Positions 643 to 13,369 of a DNA stretch of 64,000 nt are shown piece after piece; within the stretch, counting starts at the first letter, position 1, and every line of letters begins with the position of its first letter. Position numbers and translations under genes: made by a program. Under the pieces are notes generated by a model. It did no database searches, was not told the origin of the DNA, and saw only the letters and a list, made by a program, of their open reading frames with translations. The stretch is from the NCBI GenBank assembly GCA_048013815.1, contig CM106586.1:7006001-7070000 (forward strand). Reading direction: 5' to 3'. The stretch comes from Setoptus koraiensis. Taxonomy: Eukaryota; Animalia; Arthropoda.

Positions 643-3504
643 TGCTTGTGTGCCTAGCGGAATTTGCAAGCATATGTTGAAGTAATCAATTATCACGTCA
701 ACTTTTGTTGGCGATGAGACAAACAGGTGACACAACGAGACACAACAGCGAGCAATTATCCGTTACGCGTGTACGTGATAATGTAGTTGTTTCTGGCTGA
801 TTTATGAGGCCAGCAGTAGACAAAGCGACCACGACAACTGGCGGCCAGAGCGCGTTATTTGCAGCGTTATTAACAAACGGCAAGCCGAAACGTAAACAAC
901 GCGTAATCATAACAAGCCTACGACATACACAAATAAACGGCTCGCCAGGTAATTCAAGATAAGAGTGCTGTATCCATCCAAGTTGTTGTAGGTAGCGCCA
1001 AAACGGTCGCTCACATAACAGGATATAACCATATGTAATAATATGTAATAATGGATCAAGCGAATATACACAGCAAACAGCCACAATAGACAAACAATAA
1101 ACAGACCAACAGCTAGCAAACAAACGCAAAATACCGTTGCGCCTCGTCAACCATTTCGAACATCATCGTTCCTTCATCCGATTCACCCGATTCATCCCAT
1201 TGCTGCAAGTAGTAAATGTGATTGTTCTGCAGACAGACAGATAATAGTAACGTTACAAACGAATTTAAATGATATCGATTTGATAATAATGATGGCATCG
1301 TGCTCGCTGGCTTTCGGCGCTGGCGCTACTTGACGTGCGGTCACACGTCATGCAACGGTGTCCATTCTGAGAAAAAGTCTTTATAAGCGCGCCATTAATT
1401 TCATGCAACTAGACGCAAACACGCCGCATCATTAGGCAACAACGTGTTTTCATTTACAAACTCATTAGTTAACTCGACAAACAACTCATTTAGTCACACC
1501 AAGGCACATACGAAATATCGACACATTATTGTACAATAACTCAACAAATAACTGACCAATCGATGTTGGGCATCCAGTCGAACTGGATTGTCTAATTGAA
1601 TGTCAAACCGAAATCAACCAATGACATTTTCGCGTACCTATTTCGCTAGGCTTGGCAGGCTAGTTGCAAACACACGACGACACATATAATAAGTGAGTTA
1701 CTGCAACGCTTACATACTGTTATATAATCATACTTGTGTAACAGCATACAAAGCTAACGGCAGCTAACGGTTTATAATGACGTAACAATGCACAACTACA
1801 TCCCATGTATGTGCCAGTGACATGTATTGCCATTATAATGACCTATTATACAAACTAATGAGCTACTTTTGTGTTCCATATGGACACGACATTGGGCGCT
1901 GTTATTGTTTTGAAAAATTGAATAATTGAGGCACAACAATAAGCTACGCGGGCCCGCAGAAAACAAATTAAACACACCACCACAAATAGCACGATAAACG
2001 TCCAGCGTAAGACGTTCAATTCATCTACTTGTTAGGCTACTTTTGATTGTTACGCAAGTTTCAGCGGGCTGATAATATTTTTTCTACTTGCAGACAACAC
2101 ACAAATACACTAAAAGTGGGCACTTGTTATCAACACATCGCACTGGTTTTATTTCTATAGTTGTTGTAATAACTGCGAATCTGTTATCTGGAAGACACAA
2201 ATAGATATCGAGACTATTTATTAGGCAGCCATAGGTCAAGAGAATGCGCTCACACAATAAGAAATAATTCATTGTGACAACACATTTCTTCTCTTCCTTG
2301 GTTGTCGCCCTTGCAAATTGGCCAGAGCGAGCTCAAGGAAAAAAGATAATAATAATAGTAATTAATTGAAAGTATGAACAAGTGCTGCAAACCAGTGAAT
2401 TGTTGGTAAATTATTGCATCGAATGGGATTTGACAGGACGTATTAGATCGATAAGCAAACAAATTTATTAAAATATGGCAATTTGTTAGATAATACAACA
2501 CACAATGACTAGCCTTGAAGAGATGGATTCTCAGTCCAATGGTGAGTAACCCTATTTATTGATGATGTTATTAATCATCAGCAATAGCTGTTGTTGTCAT
2601 TATTGCTTTATTTTTGTTCTTTCTAGCTACACTAACTTGGCTTTTGGTGCACGCAATGATGACATAGTTGCTCAAATATCATTGTGCCAGTAATAGGCAC
2701 AATTATCCAGTCAATTTCCTCACCTTTTCCATTTACATTTTAGTTATTTATCCAACGACATTTAAGAGTAACACAATCAATAAATTATTATTATTATTAT
2801 TATTATTACTATTACTATTGCTATTATTTTTGTTAGTATTATTATTGTCATTATTATTATTGCAGGATTTATTTATAGCTTTACCAGTGGCAGTGTTCGC
2901 TGCTATCTCTCTAGCTGCTAGTAACACGTAATATCTAATATTATCCGTGTGCACTTGTTACAACGGACGATCAAGTTAGGACACAAGTAGTAACCATTAC
3001 ACACACACTGAACATGTATGGTGATGATATATTGCGCAATCCATTTAATGAGAAATCAATTTTTTGACAAGACCCAACACTAAACAAAAAGAGAGCGAAA
3101 ATTTCCATTTGAAACAGAGACATAAAAGAAAGGCTTGTTGCTAAGGACGCCTCTTGATCGGGCCCGCTATTTGTTATTATGAAGCTACCATAATGAGGCA
3201 AGCTTTGCTCTATTTGGAGCAAAACCAAAAACACAAAGAGAGATCATCATCATACGCAATATTAGTTCAGTCTGTCAATTGTTGTTCCATTGTCACTAGC
3301 AACAGTTATCAATCAGTCTAGCGACAACAACTGAGCAAGTCGTTTCGTCTCTCTCTCTTGAGCCACCAATATCTGTCACAATTATTGTCAATTGTTAATT
3401 CCATTCACATTGTCTTCCACATGTGAACACACCACTGTCTTCTGCTTTTCCGGCCAACCGCAAAACCGCCTCTCCCCCCGACACACCAATCAACGAATCA
3501 ACCA

Positions 3505-6500
3505 ATGGATATGGGCGACGAAGAGTGCGACAAGCTGCTGAGAGCTGTCAAAAAAGAGGTAACTACAGCTCAGGGAACCCCAGATCGGGCCCAGATAAAG
3601 CTCCTTTCGGGCCCCTAACACAGGGTGTCTGCTCACTGTCTCAATCGATTCGAAGCACCAAAATTATCATTATCCCCATCATGATCAAATCCACAGGTCA
3701 AACAAATCATGGAGGAGGCCGTCACCAAGAAGTTTGTCCACGAGGACAGTGGCTCCATAATATCACTTTGCGGTGAGTCACTTCTCGAAATCTCATTTCG
3801 CTTAGCGCAGTCCAGTTCGCGTGTATAAGAATACTTCCTATTTCTTCCTATTTTTTGCGTATGAGAATTTTTCCCATTTCTCATAGTGTTTGTATGAGAA
3901 AATTTCCCATTTCTCAGCGTGTTCGCCACAAGCCGCGGCGATATCAGCTTCCTAGAAAACTCATACAAGTAATGCTCATACAAGTATACTTATACAACTG
4001 TAAGAGTAGCTTTGAAGTGTGTTGTTGTCATATGTTTTCCAACCGAAAATCGCTACTAGAGATGAGCTCGACAGTTAGAAAGATGATTCCAGATAACGAG
4101 ACCTCACTTGAGAGTTAAGCTGCTTTCGAAGTAATAATATGATTGCTGGCTGCAGATTTCGGCTTGTTAGTTTAGTGAGAGGCCACTAGTGGCAGAGAGA
4201 TATATCCCAACTATCTGGAGCGAAAATCTCGAAAAACGTTATTGCGAAAGAGCGCTCGAAAAATAGCTGAAAAAACGCAGGAGAGAGTGCTCCAAAAAAA
4301 ATAAAACATGCGAGAATGTGAAGCGAAAAATGGAACCGAAGAAAATTTGCATTTGTTGTTATCATGACGGCAAAAGACAACAACATCAGCTGATAGCGAA
4401 CGATTCCACAATCTAGACACAATCTGGTTTTACTTTTTCAATAGAAATTGATTTTTCCTAGTGCCGAGACATTAGTTTATGTTCGCCTCGGGCCCGTCTG
4501 TTATCACGCAGGCAACCTTCAGCTGAGGCCATATCACCACTTTTCATTATTCAACTACTTGCCTATAATGGTGCAGTATGGTGAAGTAGAGGCCAGCCAC
4601 CATTATTGCAACAACAGCAACAACAGCCGCAACAACAGCAGTAACAACAGCAACAACAATGATTACGTAATGTTGTTCCCGCCGCAACTTGTATATATTA
4701 CGCACCTAGCACAATACCATTGAAAGCATAGATTCGCACCATATGCTGGCATGTTTTTTGATGCCTATTAATCATATGGCACCAGCAGTATTTAATCTGG
4801 GTTAGGCGGCGGCGGCGCCGCTGAATTGAGGCGATCCGACTAAAGTCACAAGCAGACACACACACACACACGTACAGACGGCCAAAGTGAGTGCCAAAAA
4901 TGTCAGGGGGAATTCTCTTTATTTGTTAGAAAAACCATTCGCATCTTCCATATTGTCCATATTGAAACTCACACACAATCGAGTCAGATGTTGCATCATG
5001 ATGAGATTAGATTGGCAATTTGCGAATGACAATGATGCTGGCATTGGTTGTGTTCGAGTCGAAGCCGATGCAATAGGATTTCCGCGTCATGCAAATCTTA
5101 TTGCGTCTATTCTGTTTGCTGTTGCGATCCACGAACAAAATAAAATGGCTTCGATACGCACATTCGAGCTCGATATACAATCGATTGGCGGCATCAAACG
5201 AACAACAGTTTGCAATCTAATTGCGGCCGGATAGTTTGTGGTGGTGCCATTGTTGTGCTAGCAGGGCAGCCAGTGATTCGGCGGCTAGACTTATCCGCAT
5301 TGAGAAGCCGCCAGTTTCTTTGTTCTCGCTTCTCGCAATTGTTTTTCTGCGTTAATTTTTGGCAACGTTCGCACGTCGCCAAAAATTATTATTATTCGCA
5401 GTGCTTTCATTTCGAGATAGTGTCTAGTTTGTGGCCACAAATTAGACATAGGCGCATAGATAGATTCGTACTAGTTGCTGATTAACTATCTGGAAATAAC
5501 TCTCTGATTGACACATACGCCGAGAACGATCATTGGACGCAAATAAAATCAAAATCAGAATAGGTTCCCAAGACACAAGAAAGTTTCCAAGAGAATGACT
5601 GGCCAGATATCATCGTGCACTGTCGTTGTGATGGCTCTGCTGATGTCGTCAACAATAACGGTTCATTCAATTCGTCCAAAAGACGTTCGAAATGCCTTTC
5701 GCCGAGAAAATAGTCTCATGCTGCCCGATCGCAGTCCCGCCATGGATGCTTACATATTTGAATTTTATGATTCGGACTCATCATTGTTATCTCCTGTTGA
5801 TAGAGTGCTCAAGAAGCGCTCAATCAGTGAGCCGCTGATGGACAATGCAATGGACTTTGTGGACAACAGATTTGACGTGATCGAAGTGAACGAAATCGTT
5901 CGCGACAATCAATTGAGTCTCGATTTGCAAGAGTTAATTATAGAATCGTTGAATCTATTGCAGGCTCAGCAAGTCAACTATGCGGACGAATTGAAAAACA
6001 ATCAGGCGGCCTCGTTGGCATTGGAGATGATCAAAAGTAATTTGAACGAGGCTCTGTACGATTTGCAAAAAACAGACGACGCACTCACAATGCATAGAGT
6101 GTTGAATGAAGTAGCGCAAGCCAACAATTTTTATCAAGCTCTCAGAGAAGATTTGCTAGCAGCCGATGGGAACCATAATGTTGACATGAGCCTTTTGGGG
6201 CCCATCAAGCCGTTATTTGATTTGTATGTGGCTATTCAGGAGCAATTTGACAGAGTGAAAAAATCTGGCTCAATGTCAGATTCTAGCAGCGCCTACACTA
6301 TCATTAAATCCATTGCAGATAAAATGGTTGAATCCATTAAAGCCACGGCTGTAGTCGATGCAAACAACAACAACGGCAACAAAATTATCAGCAATAAAAA
6401 AATCAATAATGTTGATATGATGAACGCTGTTGTACCCGTTGTTGGGCCCGCAAACAAGCCCGCGGGCGCACTCATGCCCCCTAAACCCCCGAAAAAATCG

Positions 6501-9500
6501 TCAAATCTGTTAGATAAACAGGCCATGGCTATGCCGAAGTTAGATATCGATCAAAAGAAGAGCGTCGCTATCAATGAGGCCCCCTTCAATATGATGCAAA
6601 TGAGCAAATTCAGCACTGAGAGCTATCAAGTTGATGACAATGCCGACGACGCCGACGACGCCAATTTCGCGCAATTGCTCCTTGAATATTAATCGATTGG
6701 ATCGACGATCATTCAATGGGTTGTGTTTGTCATTTGTCACCTAATTTTGTATCGCTTGTGCAACTAAACACAGGTATACCTGAATAGATTATATAGCACA
6801 GCCATATGTGAGTTTGAGATCGTGATCGGAAGCAATTCAGTTGCATTACTTATAAACAAAAATATGGAGATTTTCATTATAACATAAGGTTGTCGCATGG
6901 GCAATTGTCATAACTAATTTAATCGCGTGCCATGCCAACCCATGGCGACTGCAAGCTTTGCAGTGTCCGCCAGATCGTTATGTAATGAGGACAATTAAAT
7001 GTAGATTACATATCACCCGCAAAGAGATGCAATTATGTGCGGTGGCATTTGAAATCGACTCGCAGAATACCTTTCTTCCCATTCGCTCTAACACCTGAAC
7101 AGGAAAACCGACATGTGACATGTAAATATCAGATTAACATTATTAGCTAGCTAAATATGGTGTGCTATGTGTATCCCAGACAAAGGCCATTGTGCAAACA
7201 TTGGCTAATCTGAATCTGATTGGAATTTAATTTGATTTGATTTTGATTGATTTCGATTGATTTTGATTTGGACTGATTCACTCGAAATCATCTTTGTAAA
7301 TGTCGTCTTTTTCGTTTTATAAAGAACGACCACAATTTCATCGGCACGATGATATGCCGATCATCCGACGGATGCAACTAAGTGTCAGGGGAATTGTTTC
7401 AACTTCATCATGTCGCTCCTACGTCCAATTTATAATGTCGAAATTGTATGCGTATTATTTGTCGCCATCTCAACAGTTTTGGCTGCCATACCAAACCAAG
7501 AATCGAAGCATCCGAAGGAGCCTGAGACAATTGAAAACAAAGTCGCCAATTCAGAACTGAATGAGTCAGTTGATCTGTTTAATGCTGCTCTCAACAGTTA
7601 CGTAAGATCGCTCGGCGCTGATGAGCAGTTACGAGAGCTTCTCAATATAGCACAGACGATCAAGACATTGATAGATGGCGAACCTAGTTCATCAAGTTCC
7701 AAAAATATTTTGGACAACAATAGAAGTCTCAAGCAAATTTTGACTGAGATGAAGCAAAATGCAAATTTCCAATTTGAGTTTAATGAAACAGACAGTGGTC
7801 GTTATTGTCAAAGAGTTATAACAGAATATGCAGACATTTGTAAACAATTAAACAAGATAAATGACTTTTTTGAGGTTCAAAACGATAGCGAAAACAATGC
7901 AACGCTGTCGGTATCTAAACAATTTGAACAAACGCGAGACAAATCTCTGCAATTGTTTGCTCTAATTAGTAGATTTTCCAACAATTTATCTCTGCTGAGA
8001 AGCGAATCAATTGAGCCGATCGATCAAATAGCCTCGCAAATCCAGTTGATATTGAAGAGATGGCCATATGTTGCAATGCTGGGCAACATCGAAAACGATG
8101 CAAAGGCGGCCAAATTGGTCGATTTGCTCGAGAAATACATTATGCATTCTTCCATAAGCAAGAAATCATTTCAAGCGAAATTGTCAACATTACCAGAAAG
8201 TTACAAATATTTCGCAAGAAATGTTGCCCACTGGTTCGATAGAGATGAATTGCGTCTGAGTAGCGCTCAAGAGGAGCCTCGCCGACCGTATCCCTACCAA
8301 GCTCAATATAAACTGTGACGGAAAAATACAAATACAATTAGAAAACAAGCAATGTTTGTATTTCTTTCGCTCTCTGTTTTTTCTCTGTCGATTTTGTATC
8401 GGGCTAAATGCAACAAACTCTGCTGTAGCGATTCAATAAACTGGCCATAAGTTATCACTTGCTCATCATCAACACTTGTCTATCACTCTCGACACACAAC
8501 AATAATTTGCATAATCAGTGGCCGTGGATGCCTGTTTATCGCACGGACTGAAACGGCGCGTTTTAGGTTTGTTCAAGACGAATTCCACCACTGCACTGGT
8601 GCAGAAAATTGCCAAAAATTGCGATTCGGCCGCAGAGGTGATCAAATCGCTGGACCAGGCCTGCAAAGGCAACCAACTAAGGTAATTACCGACTGTCCAA
8701 TTGGGGCCCCAATCGCGCCAATCAAACGACGACGTGTTTGTTTACTCAGCGATATAAGCTGTTAGGTGCATAATTGAAATCTCTAATTACTCTTCGCAAT
8801 CTGATTACCCCAACCGCATAAATTGCCGTGGCTGGCGTCCAAACAAAATGTCATCTATGTGGCGTAAGCAGAACAAACTCGCCCCCGTGTGGCGAAAATA
8901 CCTCCTCGAATTCGCGACACAGCCAAGTGTCCAGTAACAGCAACTCTGTCGGAAGCGCCGCATCGCAGCAACAGCAGGCCGCGGCGTCGCAGCAAGGCGG
9001 CTCAAAATTGACCACTAGCAGCGTTAGCAGTTTGTCGCCCATCAGGCGAGCCAACAACAAGCGCTACCTCTGGATTAAAACGGCCCTTCTAATGCGAAAG
9101 CTCATTAGCATAATGGATCATCTCACTAAGCATGCAAACAAATATTACGAAGACGACGCGCTAATGTCCGACTATTTCTATGCGCAATTGTTGTCCTCGT
9201 TACTAGTGGGCCCGTGCGCGTTAGATTTCAGCCGAATGAAAACACACGATCACCTGTGGACGGACCCGAGCGCCGACGAGCTGGTTCAGCGTCACAATTT
9301 GGCCAACCCGATTGAGTGCGGCTGCAAGTGCAATCATTTCCAGAATCATAATACCCAAAATGCAACCCACAGCAACTCGCCGCAGGGCAGCCGAGCATCG
9401 CAAAGCGGCGGCCCTGCGACCAGTAACAGTAGCCACAGCGCCACTTCCGGTCAAAACAATTTAAACTTGGTGGACGAGTTGTCATCGGCGACCATTGACA

Positions 9501-12500
9501 TAATGATGATGAACTCCAACGAGCACCATTACGGCCGCCACATCAACAACCATCACCAACAACCGAATAATTGTGCTTCACCTGTAACTGTGTCTAGCAG
9601 CCACGATTTGGGCAGCACAACAACTACACCGACAACGACAACCGCAACCGCATCAACTCAATCACGCAAACCCTTGGCCCTGTCACAAAGTCTCAAAACA
9701 ACCATGGTCACCGATTGTCATCATTTCGATTGCAAGCACAGCAATCACCGGCACAATTCCAAGGGATATTCGTTCACGTCGCAAGACCAGGCGCCCATAT
9801 GGAGCCCCAGGATGCTGCACGAAACGCTGCACCAAAATTCAAAGTTGTTGCTGTTGTACGCCAAGAACAACGTTTTGATGCAAACTAGCGACATGCAAAC
9901 GATGCCCGGTTACCTGTCGTTGCATCAGAGCTCTGGCGATCTCATAATCAAATGGATACCAAATCAGATGATAAACGGCGGCAACGGTACCAACATAAGC
10001 ATTTGTAACAGCAACACCAACAGCAACAGTCTACAATCGGGCAACAAGCAACAGCCGCAAGCAGCCGAAATGCCGGATGGCGCCGGCACGGGCGCGGGCG
10101 AACAATCAAGCGCAGCCGACAATTCCTGTCGGCCCGTCGAAGAGTCGCCGCCCGTCGCCGACACTTGCGGCCACGAGCCCACACTAGCGCCGGCTAGTGC
10201 GGGTAGCGCGGGTAGTGCCGCCGGTCAATTGCCGCAGTCGCAATCGGTCAAGAGCTCCTATTTGGATCTGGTGGTGAGCTTGTCGGTGAGCCGAATAGTG
10301 TATTTGCATTGTCACGAACGCGAGGACACCGGCGAAGGAACAATAATACTGGTGGAGCGAGACGGCACACAGAGGGCGCCATTTATATTTCCGAAAGGCG
10401 GACTGTGGTCGTTCTTGTCGTGCATAGAAAGCGGACTGGAGCCCCACAGCAGCCTGGACCCGCCGCTGAGCATGAGATACAGTTCGGGTCACTATAGCAC
10501 CGGCTTGTTGGCACCGCTGTCGCCCAATGACTGCGACTCGCCGGCACACCAGCAGCGACAAATGCAACAGCAAGACTCGCTGGGCGACCTGCTCATGTCC
10601 AAGCTGACCCTATTGGGCCGCCGCAAACAAAAACAACAGACCCAATCGACGCCCACGCCCACCACCAGCACCAGCAGCTGCGAACTGACCGATCCGGCCC
10701 GACCGGCCAGCGAGGGGGGCGCCGCCGGCCAGCAGTTCAGCAACAGGACGGCCGAGCAACAGGAGGGCAGCGGCTCCGCCGAGGGCCCGGCCAGATTGGC
10801 ACCGTCGGATTATGTGTTTAGAATTGTCGCTCCGCTGGATAAAATGTTGCTGCCGAGCGCCACAAACAGTTCGTCTGTGGACACTCCGCCAAATTCGGCC
10901 AATTCAACCAACGACGATCTGTCGCTTGCCACTCAATCAAACGGACACTCCAACGCGCCCAAATATCGCTGGAATTTGAGCAAATTCACCCAGTTTGCAA
11001 CCATAGCCAAATACTCAACATCATCGACAAATTCTACTGGCTCGTCGAGCCTCAAATCGGCCAGCATTGGCACCGCCACTGGCGAGTCGCTAGATTCGTG
11101 CTGGTCGCCCTCGTCGACGACGCCCGCAACAACCGTCTGCAACAACAGCAACATCAGCAGCACCAATAGCACAAATCCAACAATAACGGTGGACACCTTG
11201 ACAACGACAACCCAATCGCACGATATTGTCAACAGTCACAGCGCCGACCTGAGAACAACCTCCAACGATGTCTCGAAAATCTCCAACCAAAACGGCGAGC
11301 AACTGTCAAACGGCAAAATCTGCGCTGCTGCGGCCGACTCACATTGCCAGTCGGCCGCGGGTGAGTGCCGGTGCCCGGGTACGCCAACCAGCCATCATCA
11401 GGCAGACCAGCAGACATTGATACAGACCAACCAGTCTATTCAGACGTTGTGTCACGCCATGAGAAAACAAATTATATCGCGCGCCTTCTACGGGTGGCTA
11501 ACGCATTGTAGACACTTCAGAACGGTCAGGTTGCATCTGGCAAAATTGGTCAAGAAAGAGATTGTGTCACAGGATTATCCGAGCGACGCCAGTGTTGGCC
11601 TCAATCAGGAGATCTGGCTAAAGTTGCACACCCAACAGACGCAAGATGTCGCCGTCGGTGGCGCAAGCGAGCTGGCCAGAGAGATGTTTCGTTTGGTGTA
11701 TTTTGGTGGCATTAAAGAGGCCAGTTTGCGCAAGACAGTGTGGCCCTACTTGTTGGGCCATTATCAATTTGAGGATAGCGAGGAGGCGCGCACGTTCAAA
11801 GACAACCAAGTCAGAGAATTGTATTATTCGTCTATGAACGATTGGCAACAAATTGAGGCCGTTGTCAGACAGCGGGATCGTGATATATGCGCCGCAAATA
11901 TGGCCAAATATTCCAACGAACGAAAGTTGTCCAAACAAAACAAAGATTCTTCCGATTCAATTCTCGTTAACAAAAGGGAGGTGACATTCGAGGATTCGTC
12001 CTCGTCGGCGTTACACATGTCACACAGAGACGAAGAAGTTTTCAGAGAAGAAACCATGTCTTGCGCTAACGACGACGATTTCATGACGCAACCAGATGAT
12101 AATAACAAAAATATTGATAATAACAATAATAATGAACAACAAACGCAAATGGACGAAGATGATTGCACAGTGGCCCCGGCCAATGGTCAAGATGACGTAT
12201 ACGATAATAATGACGAAGCAGAAGAATCACAAGATGTTGTCATTGACGACAACCCCATAGATAAGATTGAGGCTATTGAAAGAAGAAAATTACAGGGTCG
12301 ATTAGAGAGCACCGGAAGTGTTGGCTCAGACGCCTCTATTACAGACCAATTTGGGTGTAATATACATAGAATAGATAAGGATGTTCAAAGATGTGATAGA
12401 AATTACTGGTATTTCACAAACACCACCAATTTAGACAAGCTACGGAATGTCATGTGCAGCTACGTCTGGCAAAATTTAGATGTGGGATACGTGCAAGGAA

Positions 12501-13369
12501 TGTGCGATCTGGCGGCTCCATTCTTGGTCATTTTCGACGACGGTAAGGCACACATGCAGGCTATCATTAATCTTGAGATCAACCTTTTAAAATTTGAATA
12601 TATCCCATACGTTAATATGATAATATTATGTAACTACTCCCTCTCTATCTATCAGAAATTATGGCCTACAGTTGTTTCAGTTTGTTGATGAAAAGAATGG
12701 TGGCAAACTTCCCCCACGGTGGAGCTATGGATCAACATTTTGCAAGTCTACGCTACATGCTTCAAGTTTTAGATCCGGAATTGTTCGAGATGATGCAAAG
12801 TAACGGCGATTATACGCATTTTTATTTTTGCTACAGATGGCTGCTATTGGATTTTAAAAGAGGTAAGTTTCGGTTTCATTGAAAGTAAATCATTAACGAG
12901 TCTTCTTTTCTCCGACAGCATCTCATAATGAATTTTTAAAATTGTGCCTTCGTCTTTATCTTCCACTTACAATCGCAACAGAGCTCACTTATGAAGATGT
13001 GTTTCGCGTCTGGGAGATTATCTGGGCTGCTAGTCATATATCTACCGACAATTTCGTTCTATTCGTTGCATTGGCTATGATCAAATATTATCGTGATATC
13101 ATTATAGAGAACAATATGGATTTTACCGACACAATTAAGTTTTTTAACGGTCAGTATGTGGTTGTAGTGGTAAACTTCGATCTTGATTAATCATCTGAAC
13201 ACATGAATTTTCGTTGCATATTCGATTGAACTATTGATTTTATGAGTATATTAACATTTCATCATCATTATCACATTCCATAGAGATGGCAGAGAAACAC
13301 GACGCACAAAGGATTGTAAGTCTCGCCAAAGATTGTGTATTGGAGGTACAAAATATGCTCAACGCATAA
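3505..13369 (+). CDS. SGSM: Small G protein signaling modulator 1/2-like (RUN + TBC Rab-GAP); 7 exons approx. 3505-3558, 3697-3772, 8519-8681, 8872-12542, 12656-12862, 12982-13149, 13284-13369
   Basis: Hand-spliced N-terminus [18 protein letters not shown]|[25 protein letters not shown]|[14 protein letters not shown] matches the SGSM1/2 start ([27 protein letters not shown]). Also present: [32 protein letters not shown] and TBC motifs [44 protein letters not shown] junctions are phase-consistent. Confidence 0.93.
3823..3924. repeat. Three ~33-36-bp tandem units (GTATGAGAA...TTCCCATTTCTCA...) in SGSM intron 2
   Basis: Units start at about 3823, 3859 and 3892. The last two contain an internal TGAGAA/TTCTCA inverted pair. 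Confidence 0.7.
5595..6692 (+). CDS. Orphan secreted protein A (365 aa, intronless), nested in SGSM intron 2
   Basis: Long ORF with ATG and a hydrophobic leader ([25 protein letters not shown]). The mature part looks helical, has no Cys and contains a KKR site. No family recognised. Confidence 0.8.
   Translation: MTGQISSCTVVVMALLMSSTITVHSIRPKDVRNAFRRENSLMLPDRSPAMDAYIFEFYDSDSSLLSPVDRVLKKRSISEPLMDNAMDFVDNRFDVIEVNEIVRDNQLSLDLQELIIESLNLLQAQQVNYADELKNNQAASLALEMIKSNLNEALYDLQKTDDALTMHRVLNEVAQANNFYQALREDLLAADGNHNVDMSLLGPIKPLFDLYVAIQEQFDRVKKSGSMSDSSSAYTIIKSIADKMVESIKATAVVDANNNNGNKIISNKKINNVDMMNAVVPVVGPANKPAGALMPPKPPKKSSNLLDKQAMAMPKLDIDQKKSVAINEAPFNMMQMSKFSTESYQVDDNADDADDANFAQLLLEY
7410..8318 (+). CDS. 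Orphan secreted protein B (302 aa, intronless), nested in SGSM intron 2
   Basis: Long ORF with signal-like [14 protein letters not shown], a helical-looking mature region with two Cys, and AATAAA at 8435-8440. No family recognised. Confidence 0.8.
   Translation: MSLLRPIYNVEIVCVLFVAISTVLAAIPNQESKHPKEPETIENKVANSELNESVDLFNAALNSYVRSLGADEQLRELLNIAQTIKTLIDGEPSSSSSKNILDNNRSLKQILTEMKQNANFQFEFNETDSGRYCQRVITEYADICKQLNKINDFFEVQNDSENNATLSVSKQFEQTRDKSLQLFALISRFSNNLSLLRSESIEPIDQIASQIQLILKRWPYVAMLGNIENDAKAAKLVDLLEKYIMHSSISKKSFQAKLSTLPESYKYFARNVAHWFDRDELRLSSAQEEPRRPYPYQAQYKL

Follow-up and report, generated by a model that had tools for sequence, protein, structure and literature searches.

Putative nested genes in the second intron of an SGSM-type gene

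A 64,000-nucleotide (nt) stretch of the genome of the eriophyoid mite Setoptus koraiensis (assembly GCA_048013815.1, contig CM106586.1, positions 7,006,001 to 7,070,000; hereafter the window, to which all coordinates refer) contains two open reading frames (ORFs), A and B, that very probably are independent single-exon genes for secreted proteins, nested in the sense orientation in intron 2 of an SGSM/RUTBC gene. A preliminary description of the window had pointed to two signal-peptide ORFs of 365 and 302 amino acids (aa) within one 4.7-kb SGSM intron. Both ORFs are present and intact, and the splice sites of the intron were confirmed. The same is true for the matching phase of exons 3697-3772 and 8519-8681, where the last base of exon 2 (G) and the first two bases of exon 3 (TG) would form a Val codon (G|TG), and for the exceptional length of the host intron, which measures 4,746 nt, whereas introns 1 and 3 have 138 and 190 nt, respectively. 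The features on which the argument rests are the following:

3505-3558, + strand: exon 1 of the SGSM-like host gene, 18 aa, starting with ATG, phase 0, donor GAG|GTAACT
3697-3772, + strand: host exon 2, 25 aa plus the first base of the Val codon
3773-8518, + strand: host intron 2, 4,746 nt, holding nested genes A and B
5595-6692, + strand: gene A, intronless, 365 aa, ATG start
7410-8318, + strand: gene B, intronless, 302 aa, ATG start
8519-8681, + strand: host exon 3, start of the RUN domain
8872-12688 (3' donor not mapped), + strand: large host exon, acceptor aagcag|A inferred from phase

Coding potential and conservation of A and B

Both A and B are located entirely between the end of exon 2 (3772) and the start of exon 3 (8519), i.e., the two guests are contained within a single intron of the host. 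Chance does not account for frames of 365 and 302 aa, as the longest ATG-initiated ORF in 500 shuffled versions of the intron was on average 88 aa and at most 178 aa. Codon usage was scored as a log-likelihood trained on the other long ORFs of the window, the training genes themselves scoring 0.01-0.34. In their own frames A and B scored +0.17 and +0.12 per codon, respectively, while their other five frames and the remaining part of the intron were negative, and between positions 3400 and 8900 A and B are the top two open frames by this measure. No other open frame with a convincing coding signal, i.e., no further exon or gene, was found in intron 2; the frame at 4445-4720 scores only through a CAA/CAG microsatellite and was rejected as an extra coding region.

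A search of 5.8 billion clustered proteins identified one close relative of each ORF. P0001 (379 aa) is 52% identical to A over 97% of its length, and P0002 (305 aa) is 59% identical to B over 92% of its length. P0001 and P0002 are each encoded on one 5,401-bp Logan contig of another assembly, and most simply this is the same contig, in which case the adjacency of A and B would be conserved. The maintenance of full-length frames at 52 and 59% identity argues for purifying selection on both A and B as well as for conservation of the pair, and by length, codon usage, signal-like N-termini and conservation the two look like real protein-coding genes. The A-B pair is probably older than the split from the relative that carries P0001 and P0002.

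The host gene

The host gene extends on the + strand from approximately 3,500 to 13,200, and its introns are concentrated at the 5' end. Its exons were searched against protein families one by one. Exon 3 matches Pfam RUN at positions 5-52 (E 2.3e-5, above cutoff), and the large exon matches RUN positions 45-130, followed by PH_RBD (2.8e-31) and the start of RabGAP-TBC (3e-16); the TBC domain continues in short exons from 12661 to about 13190. As a single RUN domain is divided between exon 3 and the large exon and the domains are collinear, the two exons belong to one SGSM-type gene. The order RUN, Rab-binding PH-like, TBC is the canonical one for SGSM/RUTBC Rab GTPase-activating proteins (RabGAPs) and is thereby common to the mite gene and SGSM1/2 (RUTBC1/2). 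The mite gene differs from these by carrying long low-complexity inserts in one 3.8-kb exon.

Exon 3 contains no Met and an in-frame TAA is found at 8512-8514, two codons 5' of its acceptor; it must therefore be spliced to an upstream coding exon. The phase-matched donor at 3772 is the obvious candidate for its splice partner. Exon 2 is bordered by the acceptor ...tccacag|GTC and the consensus donor TTGCG|GTGAGT, and exon 3 by the acceptor ...cataatcag|TGG and the donor CTAAG|GTAATT. Exon 1 is too short for family scans, and the putative assignment of exons 1 and 2 to the host was made by phase, canonical splice sites and the conserved N-terminus of SGSM1/2, with which the residues across the exon 2/3 join are presumably collinear.

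Predicted products of A and B

In A and B the only hydropathy maxima are found at residues 5-25, and maxima are likewise N-terminal in P0001-P0008, which include the more distant relatives described below. Candidate signal cuts are present at residues 25/26 in both proteins (VHS|IRP in A and VLA|AIP in B), with small residues at -3 and -1, and small residues occupy these two positions in all of the relatives as well. By these heuristic measures A and B have an N-terminal signal-like segment and no other membrane segment, as for classical secretion, and the products would most likely enter the secretory pathway and end up extracellularly. Each guest would thus encode a precursor from which an N-terminal signal peptide is cleaved, leaving a mature chain that is mainly alpha-helical and poor in Cys.

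The A protein is acidic (isoelectric point 4.7) and its single Cys is located in the signal segment. A conserved helical core (approximately residues 88-257) is followed by a Pro/Lys-rich tail, which is non-helical and of low confidence in the model, and then by a conserved acidic C-terminus. The B protein is predicted to be all-helical and carries six NxS/T sequons, and it is probably glycosylated. AlphaFold, run on two-sequence alignments, returned all-helical chains for A and B with predicted local distance difference test (pLDDT) values of 39 and 40, respectively, and helical should therefore be read as a secondary-structure tendency only. At such values matches in a fold search would be meaningless. 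With this reading of helical, the view of the products as secreted-looking, Cys-poor and helical-looking stands, given the signal-like N-termini, the one Cys in A and the helical predictions.

A and B were rejected as paralogues of each other, the BLASTP match between them being limited to 42 residues (E 0.04) and the hhalign probability to 0.3%. The question of a shared fold, which had been raised in the preliminary description, was on the same values answered in the negative at the sequence level.

Relatives of B and the restricted range of A

An exhaustive HMMER scan of 1.84 billion representative proteins with a profile of B and P0002 matched P0003, P0004, P0006, and P0007 with E values between 5e-6 and 6e-4; a further match, P0005 (1,489 aa), is a bacterial FG-GAP/HYR protein and was discarded as a false positive. 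The four matches are 315-442 aa long with 41-52% mutual identity, and they have signal peptides and 8-12 sequons. A word search added P0008 (581 aa, ENA) as the fifth further member, and P0003-P0008 originate from Logan or ENA assemblies, P0006 being encoded on a contig of 10.6 kb. When the alignment of B and P0002 was compared by hhalign with that of P0003, P0004, P0006, and P0007 the probability was 97.5% (E 5.3e-12) over 172 columns, corresponding to B residues 110-284. In a reciprocal profile search of the 48.8-Mb S. koraiensis genome in six frames, ORF B was the sole match (E 8.9e-14).

The C-terminal core of the family is characterised by the motifs N-x-NF, T-x-FG-x-YY, (L)TRPS, PY[IV]xMLG, and LL-x-Y...F-x-x-KL-x-x-LP. 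B retains, in register, NANF, TDSGRY, VSK, PYVAMLG, LLEKY, and FQAKLSTLP, and it lacks the EREKYYKFYD block that is found in the N-terminal half of the family. By these comparisons B is the sole member in this genome, shortened and divergent, of an unnamed family of secreted proteins with representatives in at least five other public assemblies. The family seems to be fast-evolving, heavily N-glycosylatable and helical. The HMMER scan, the hhalign comparison and the reciprocal genome search thus place B in a wider family, and as a consequence B is neither an orphan nor a gene born de novo, contrary to what had been proposed for it.

For A the only relative found was P0001, by a word search and with no exhaustive HMMER scan of A made, and the orphan status of A is provisional. 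A was also considered as a member of the B family and rejected (hhalign probability 0.1%). In Pfam, A, B, P0001-P0004, and P0006-P0008 produced no more than sub-threshold noise, and no PDB profile match reached an E value under 0.1. A and P0006 had no usable match in the ESM Atlas, and the profiles of A and of the B family found nothing when metagenome loci were scanned with them. On these searches A and B appear to be restricted to a narrow lineage. The term lineage-specific, as originally applied to both genes, can therefore be kept in the sense of a narrow lineage without Pfam, PDB or Atlas matches, and it is only for B that the stronger term orphan has to be abandoned.

Origin of the nested genes

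The two ORFs had originally been regarded as insertions, either retroposed or de novo. A search of the complete 48.76-Mb genome, which consists of two contigs of 24,221,962 bp (C1) and 24,533,333 bp (C2), revealed neither a paralogue nor a parent gene for A or B at E≤1, and both genes are single copy. No A-run of nine or more, i.e., no poly(A) remnant, is present in intron 2; the shorter runs of eight at 4294 and seven at 6396 are neither of them positioned just downstream of a stop codon. Flanking direct repeats or target-site duplications were not found at either A or B. With no paralogue, no poly(A) remnant and no flanking repeats there is no sign of retroposition, and the three hallmarks of a retrogene (parent gene, poly(A) remnant, and target-site duplications) are missing from the locus.

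The single-exon structure is uninformative in this respect, because 83.7% of the genes are intronless in Aculops lycopersici, the only eriophyoid for which statistics on gene structure have been published (PMC7738191). The introns retained in that species are biased to the 5' ends of genes and have a median length of 170 bp (PMC7738191), a bias that the mite host gene resembles. De novo birth is excluded for B by the existence of older protein homologues. For A, such an origin would only have to predate the divergence of S. koraiensis from the bearer of P0001.

Alternative explanations

Several observations weigh against the view that A and B are independent secreted-protein genes inside an SGSM intron. 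The 3772-8519 junction, the ends of the guest transcripts and the expression of the guests are predicted from sequence alone, and the 25 aa of exon 2 have no match of their own in Pfam, PDB or a full-text peptide search. The signal peptides were called by hydropathy and the -3/-1 rule, which is a heuristic and not a trained predictor, the n-region of A has no basic residue, and the helical nature of the products is limited to a tendency by the low pLDDT. Finally, the placement of P0001 and P0002 on a common contig was concluded from the identical size of 5,401 bp. Some of these points would also fit an arrangement in which there is no nesting at all, i.e., where the exons at 3505-3772 are remnants or parts of another transcript, the SGSM gene starts downstream of B, and A and B are intergenic. 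Only a weak polypyrimidine tract precedes the acceptor at 8518, which together with the predicted nature of the junction and the lack of a database match for exon 2 speaks for such an arrangement. On the other hand exons 1 and 2 are open, begin with ATG, match exon 3 in phase and have canonical splice sites, among them the GTGAGT donor. Given that exon 3 has no Met and is preceded by the TAA before its acceptor, a start downstream of B would truncate the RUN domain. We therefore regard intergenic A and B as very improbable. It is also conceivable that the 4.7-kb segment with A and B was misplaced between the SGSM exons during assembly, although nothing points directly to this. The segment is unique in the genome and has no border repeats that could seed a misjoin, its borders coincide exactly with good splice sites, and the adjacency of A and B is apparently conserved in a second assembly. 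The S. koraiensis assembly was made from PacBio continuous long reads with Hi-C scaffolding and manual correction (PMC11920263). An artefact of this kind has hardly any probability.

A different question is whether A and B, if they are nested genes, are lineage-specific orphan insertions (retroposed or de novo) that act as salivary effectors injected into the plant. The secreted-looking, Cys-poor and helical character of both, the missing matches in Pfam, PDB and the Atlas, and the single relative of A (P0001) are all in line with this, and so is the report that in A. lycopersici 612 proteins are predicted to be secreted, of which 351 belong to no orthogroup that includes non-eriophyoids, effectors being expected to be species-specific (PMC7738191). 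Membership of B in a wider family, however, makes B neither orphan nor de novo, the locus shows neither a poly(A) tail nor target-site duplications, a parent copy was not found either, and intronlessness carries no information in an eriophyoid. Furthermore, the testis enrichment of Drosophila same-strand nested genes (see below) makes a reproductive role at least as plausible. Taken as a whole the orphan-effector proposal is unlikely, and nested single-exon genes for secreted proteins, one of them from a wider family, remain the preferred reading of the locus.

Sequence elements of the long intron

Intron 2 consists of unique DNA, the one exception being a (CAA/CAG)n microsatellite at 4608-4661. 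No transposon was found in it, and Rfam gave no match. The microsatellite ((GCAACAACA)n) is of a common type, with near-identical 50-nt tracts at no fewer than 80 sites distributed over both chromosomes. Just after the exon 2 donor, at 3823-3923, are three tandem units of 33-36 nt (GTATGAGAA..TTTCCCATTTCTCA..), and a tract rich in GATTT/GATTG short repeats is located at 7211-7266, approximately 150-200 nt upstream of the ATG of B. Candidate signals for separate transcription of the guests are as follows:

6994-6999, + strand: ATTAAA, nearest candidate poly(A) signal after A, 302 nt past the stop codon; weak evidence
7216-7223, + strand: CTGATTGG, inverted CCAAT/Y-box-like, within the GATTT-rich tract; motif only
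7318-7323, + strand: TATAAA, 92 nt upstream of the ATG of B; candidate promoter of its own
8435-8440, + strand: AATAAA, candidate poly(A) signal of B, 117 nt past the stop codon and 79 nt before the host acceptor

As far as motifs go, B is therefore associated with TATAAA, CTGATTGG and AATAAA, and A with ATTAAA only. In total, five AATAAA hexamers are present on the sense strand of intron 2.

Expression and possible role

That 3772 is spliced to 8519, that the guests have promoters and poly(A) sites of their own, that their products are secreted and that these have a biological role are all steps deduced from the arrangement described above. If they hold, the guest pair would account for the size of intron 2, 4.7 kb in a gene where the neighbouring introns are 138 and 190 nt. 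The host polymerase would have to read through both guests and through the five sense-strand AATAAA hexamers, including the likely B signal located just before the host acceptor. As the guests and their poly(A) signals are read through in this manner, transcriptional interference between host and guests is plausible.

The products may function in saliva and the manipulation of the plant, or equally in reproduction (as spermatophore or seminal proteins) or elsewhere outside the cell. A salivary-effector role is conjectural and no better supported than a reproductive or other extracellular one. It is tempting to speculate that A was born de novo within the SGSM intron in the phytoptid lineage and that A and B form an effector cassette that is gated by, or coupled to, read-through of the host gene; such a scenario is, however, highly unlikely.

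S. koraiensis belongs to the Phytoptidae within the Eriophyoidea and has two chromosomes, and the published sequencing consists of DNA and Hi-C runs (PMC11920263). Its annotation comprises 5,954 genes predicted by homology and ab initio methods without RNA sequencing (RNA-seq) (PMC11920263), and because of this the published gene set may miss lineage-restricted genes such as A and B. The present analysis supplies models of A and B as well as of the 5' part of the host gene. The family of B is in addition a concrete set of candidates in the search for secreted proteins of eriophyoids, which manipulate plants.

Comparison with other arthropods

Approximately 10% of the genes of Drosophila melanogaster are nested, 71% of these being antisense and 29% sense to their host, and 72.5% of the sense-strand nested genes are single-exon; the latter group is fast-evolving and enriched for expression in testis (PMC3814207). 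The preliminary description had noted that nested genes are more often antisense. This agrees with the 71% figure, but with about 29% in the sense orientation a same-strand arrangement is less remarkable than was implied (PMC3814207). In light of the Drosophila numbers the mite layout is in fact the typical form of same-strand nesting. The similarities are several: the guests are short, single-exon, in the sense orientation and located wholly in an intron of a longer and conserved host gene, they apparently evolve fast, and their presence lengthens the host intron. The differences are that the mite case is found in a streamlined 49-Mb genome where long introns are rare, that there are two guests in tandem, and that A and B have no duplicate parent, whereas many young nested genes of Drosophila are duplicates.

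A second comparison is offered by the lineage-restricted secretome of A. lycopersici (PMC7738191). Like A and B these are signal-peptide proteins with no recognisable domains, they are restricted to eriophyoids and their genes are mostly intronless, and they have been discussed as candidate effectors in the manipulation of the plant (PMC7738191). The salivary effectors of spider mites, as they are summarised in the same source (Jonckheere 2016; Villarroel 2016, in PMC7738191), are similarly secreted, small to medium in size and taxonomically restricted; their fold is not known and they too come from a plant-feeding acariform mite. No sequence similarity between the effectors covered there and A or B was found, however, and the resemblance is one of profile only.

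The layout is therefore ordinary for arthropods, same-strand single-exon nesting and lineage-specific secretomes being already well documented, and current understanding is unchanged by the locus. What is specific to this case is that the guests are two in tandem and that an intron of such unusual length, in an otherwise streamlined genome, is accounted for by them; the locus shows how a rare long intron may persist there, i.e., by being occupied by genes.

Flanking sequences and other observations

At the chromosome level, the first 400 bases of C2 contain no TTTGG-type telomere repeat of the kind reported for another eriophyoid. Upstream of the SGSM gene, at 458-685 and 2668-2931, are a (GT)n microsatellite, read as CVCVCV..., and a CTT/CTG-type repeat with a poly-Leu frame. 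Downstream, on the - strand at 13719-15500, are ORFs resembling a multi-pass membrane channel, by eye only possibly of the mucolipin/TRPML type. These are convergent with the SGSM gene, and a very small spacer separates them from its 3' end.

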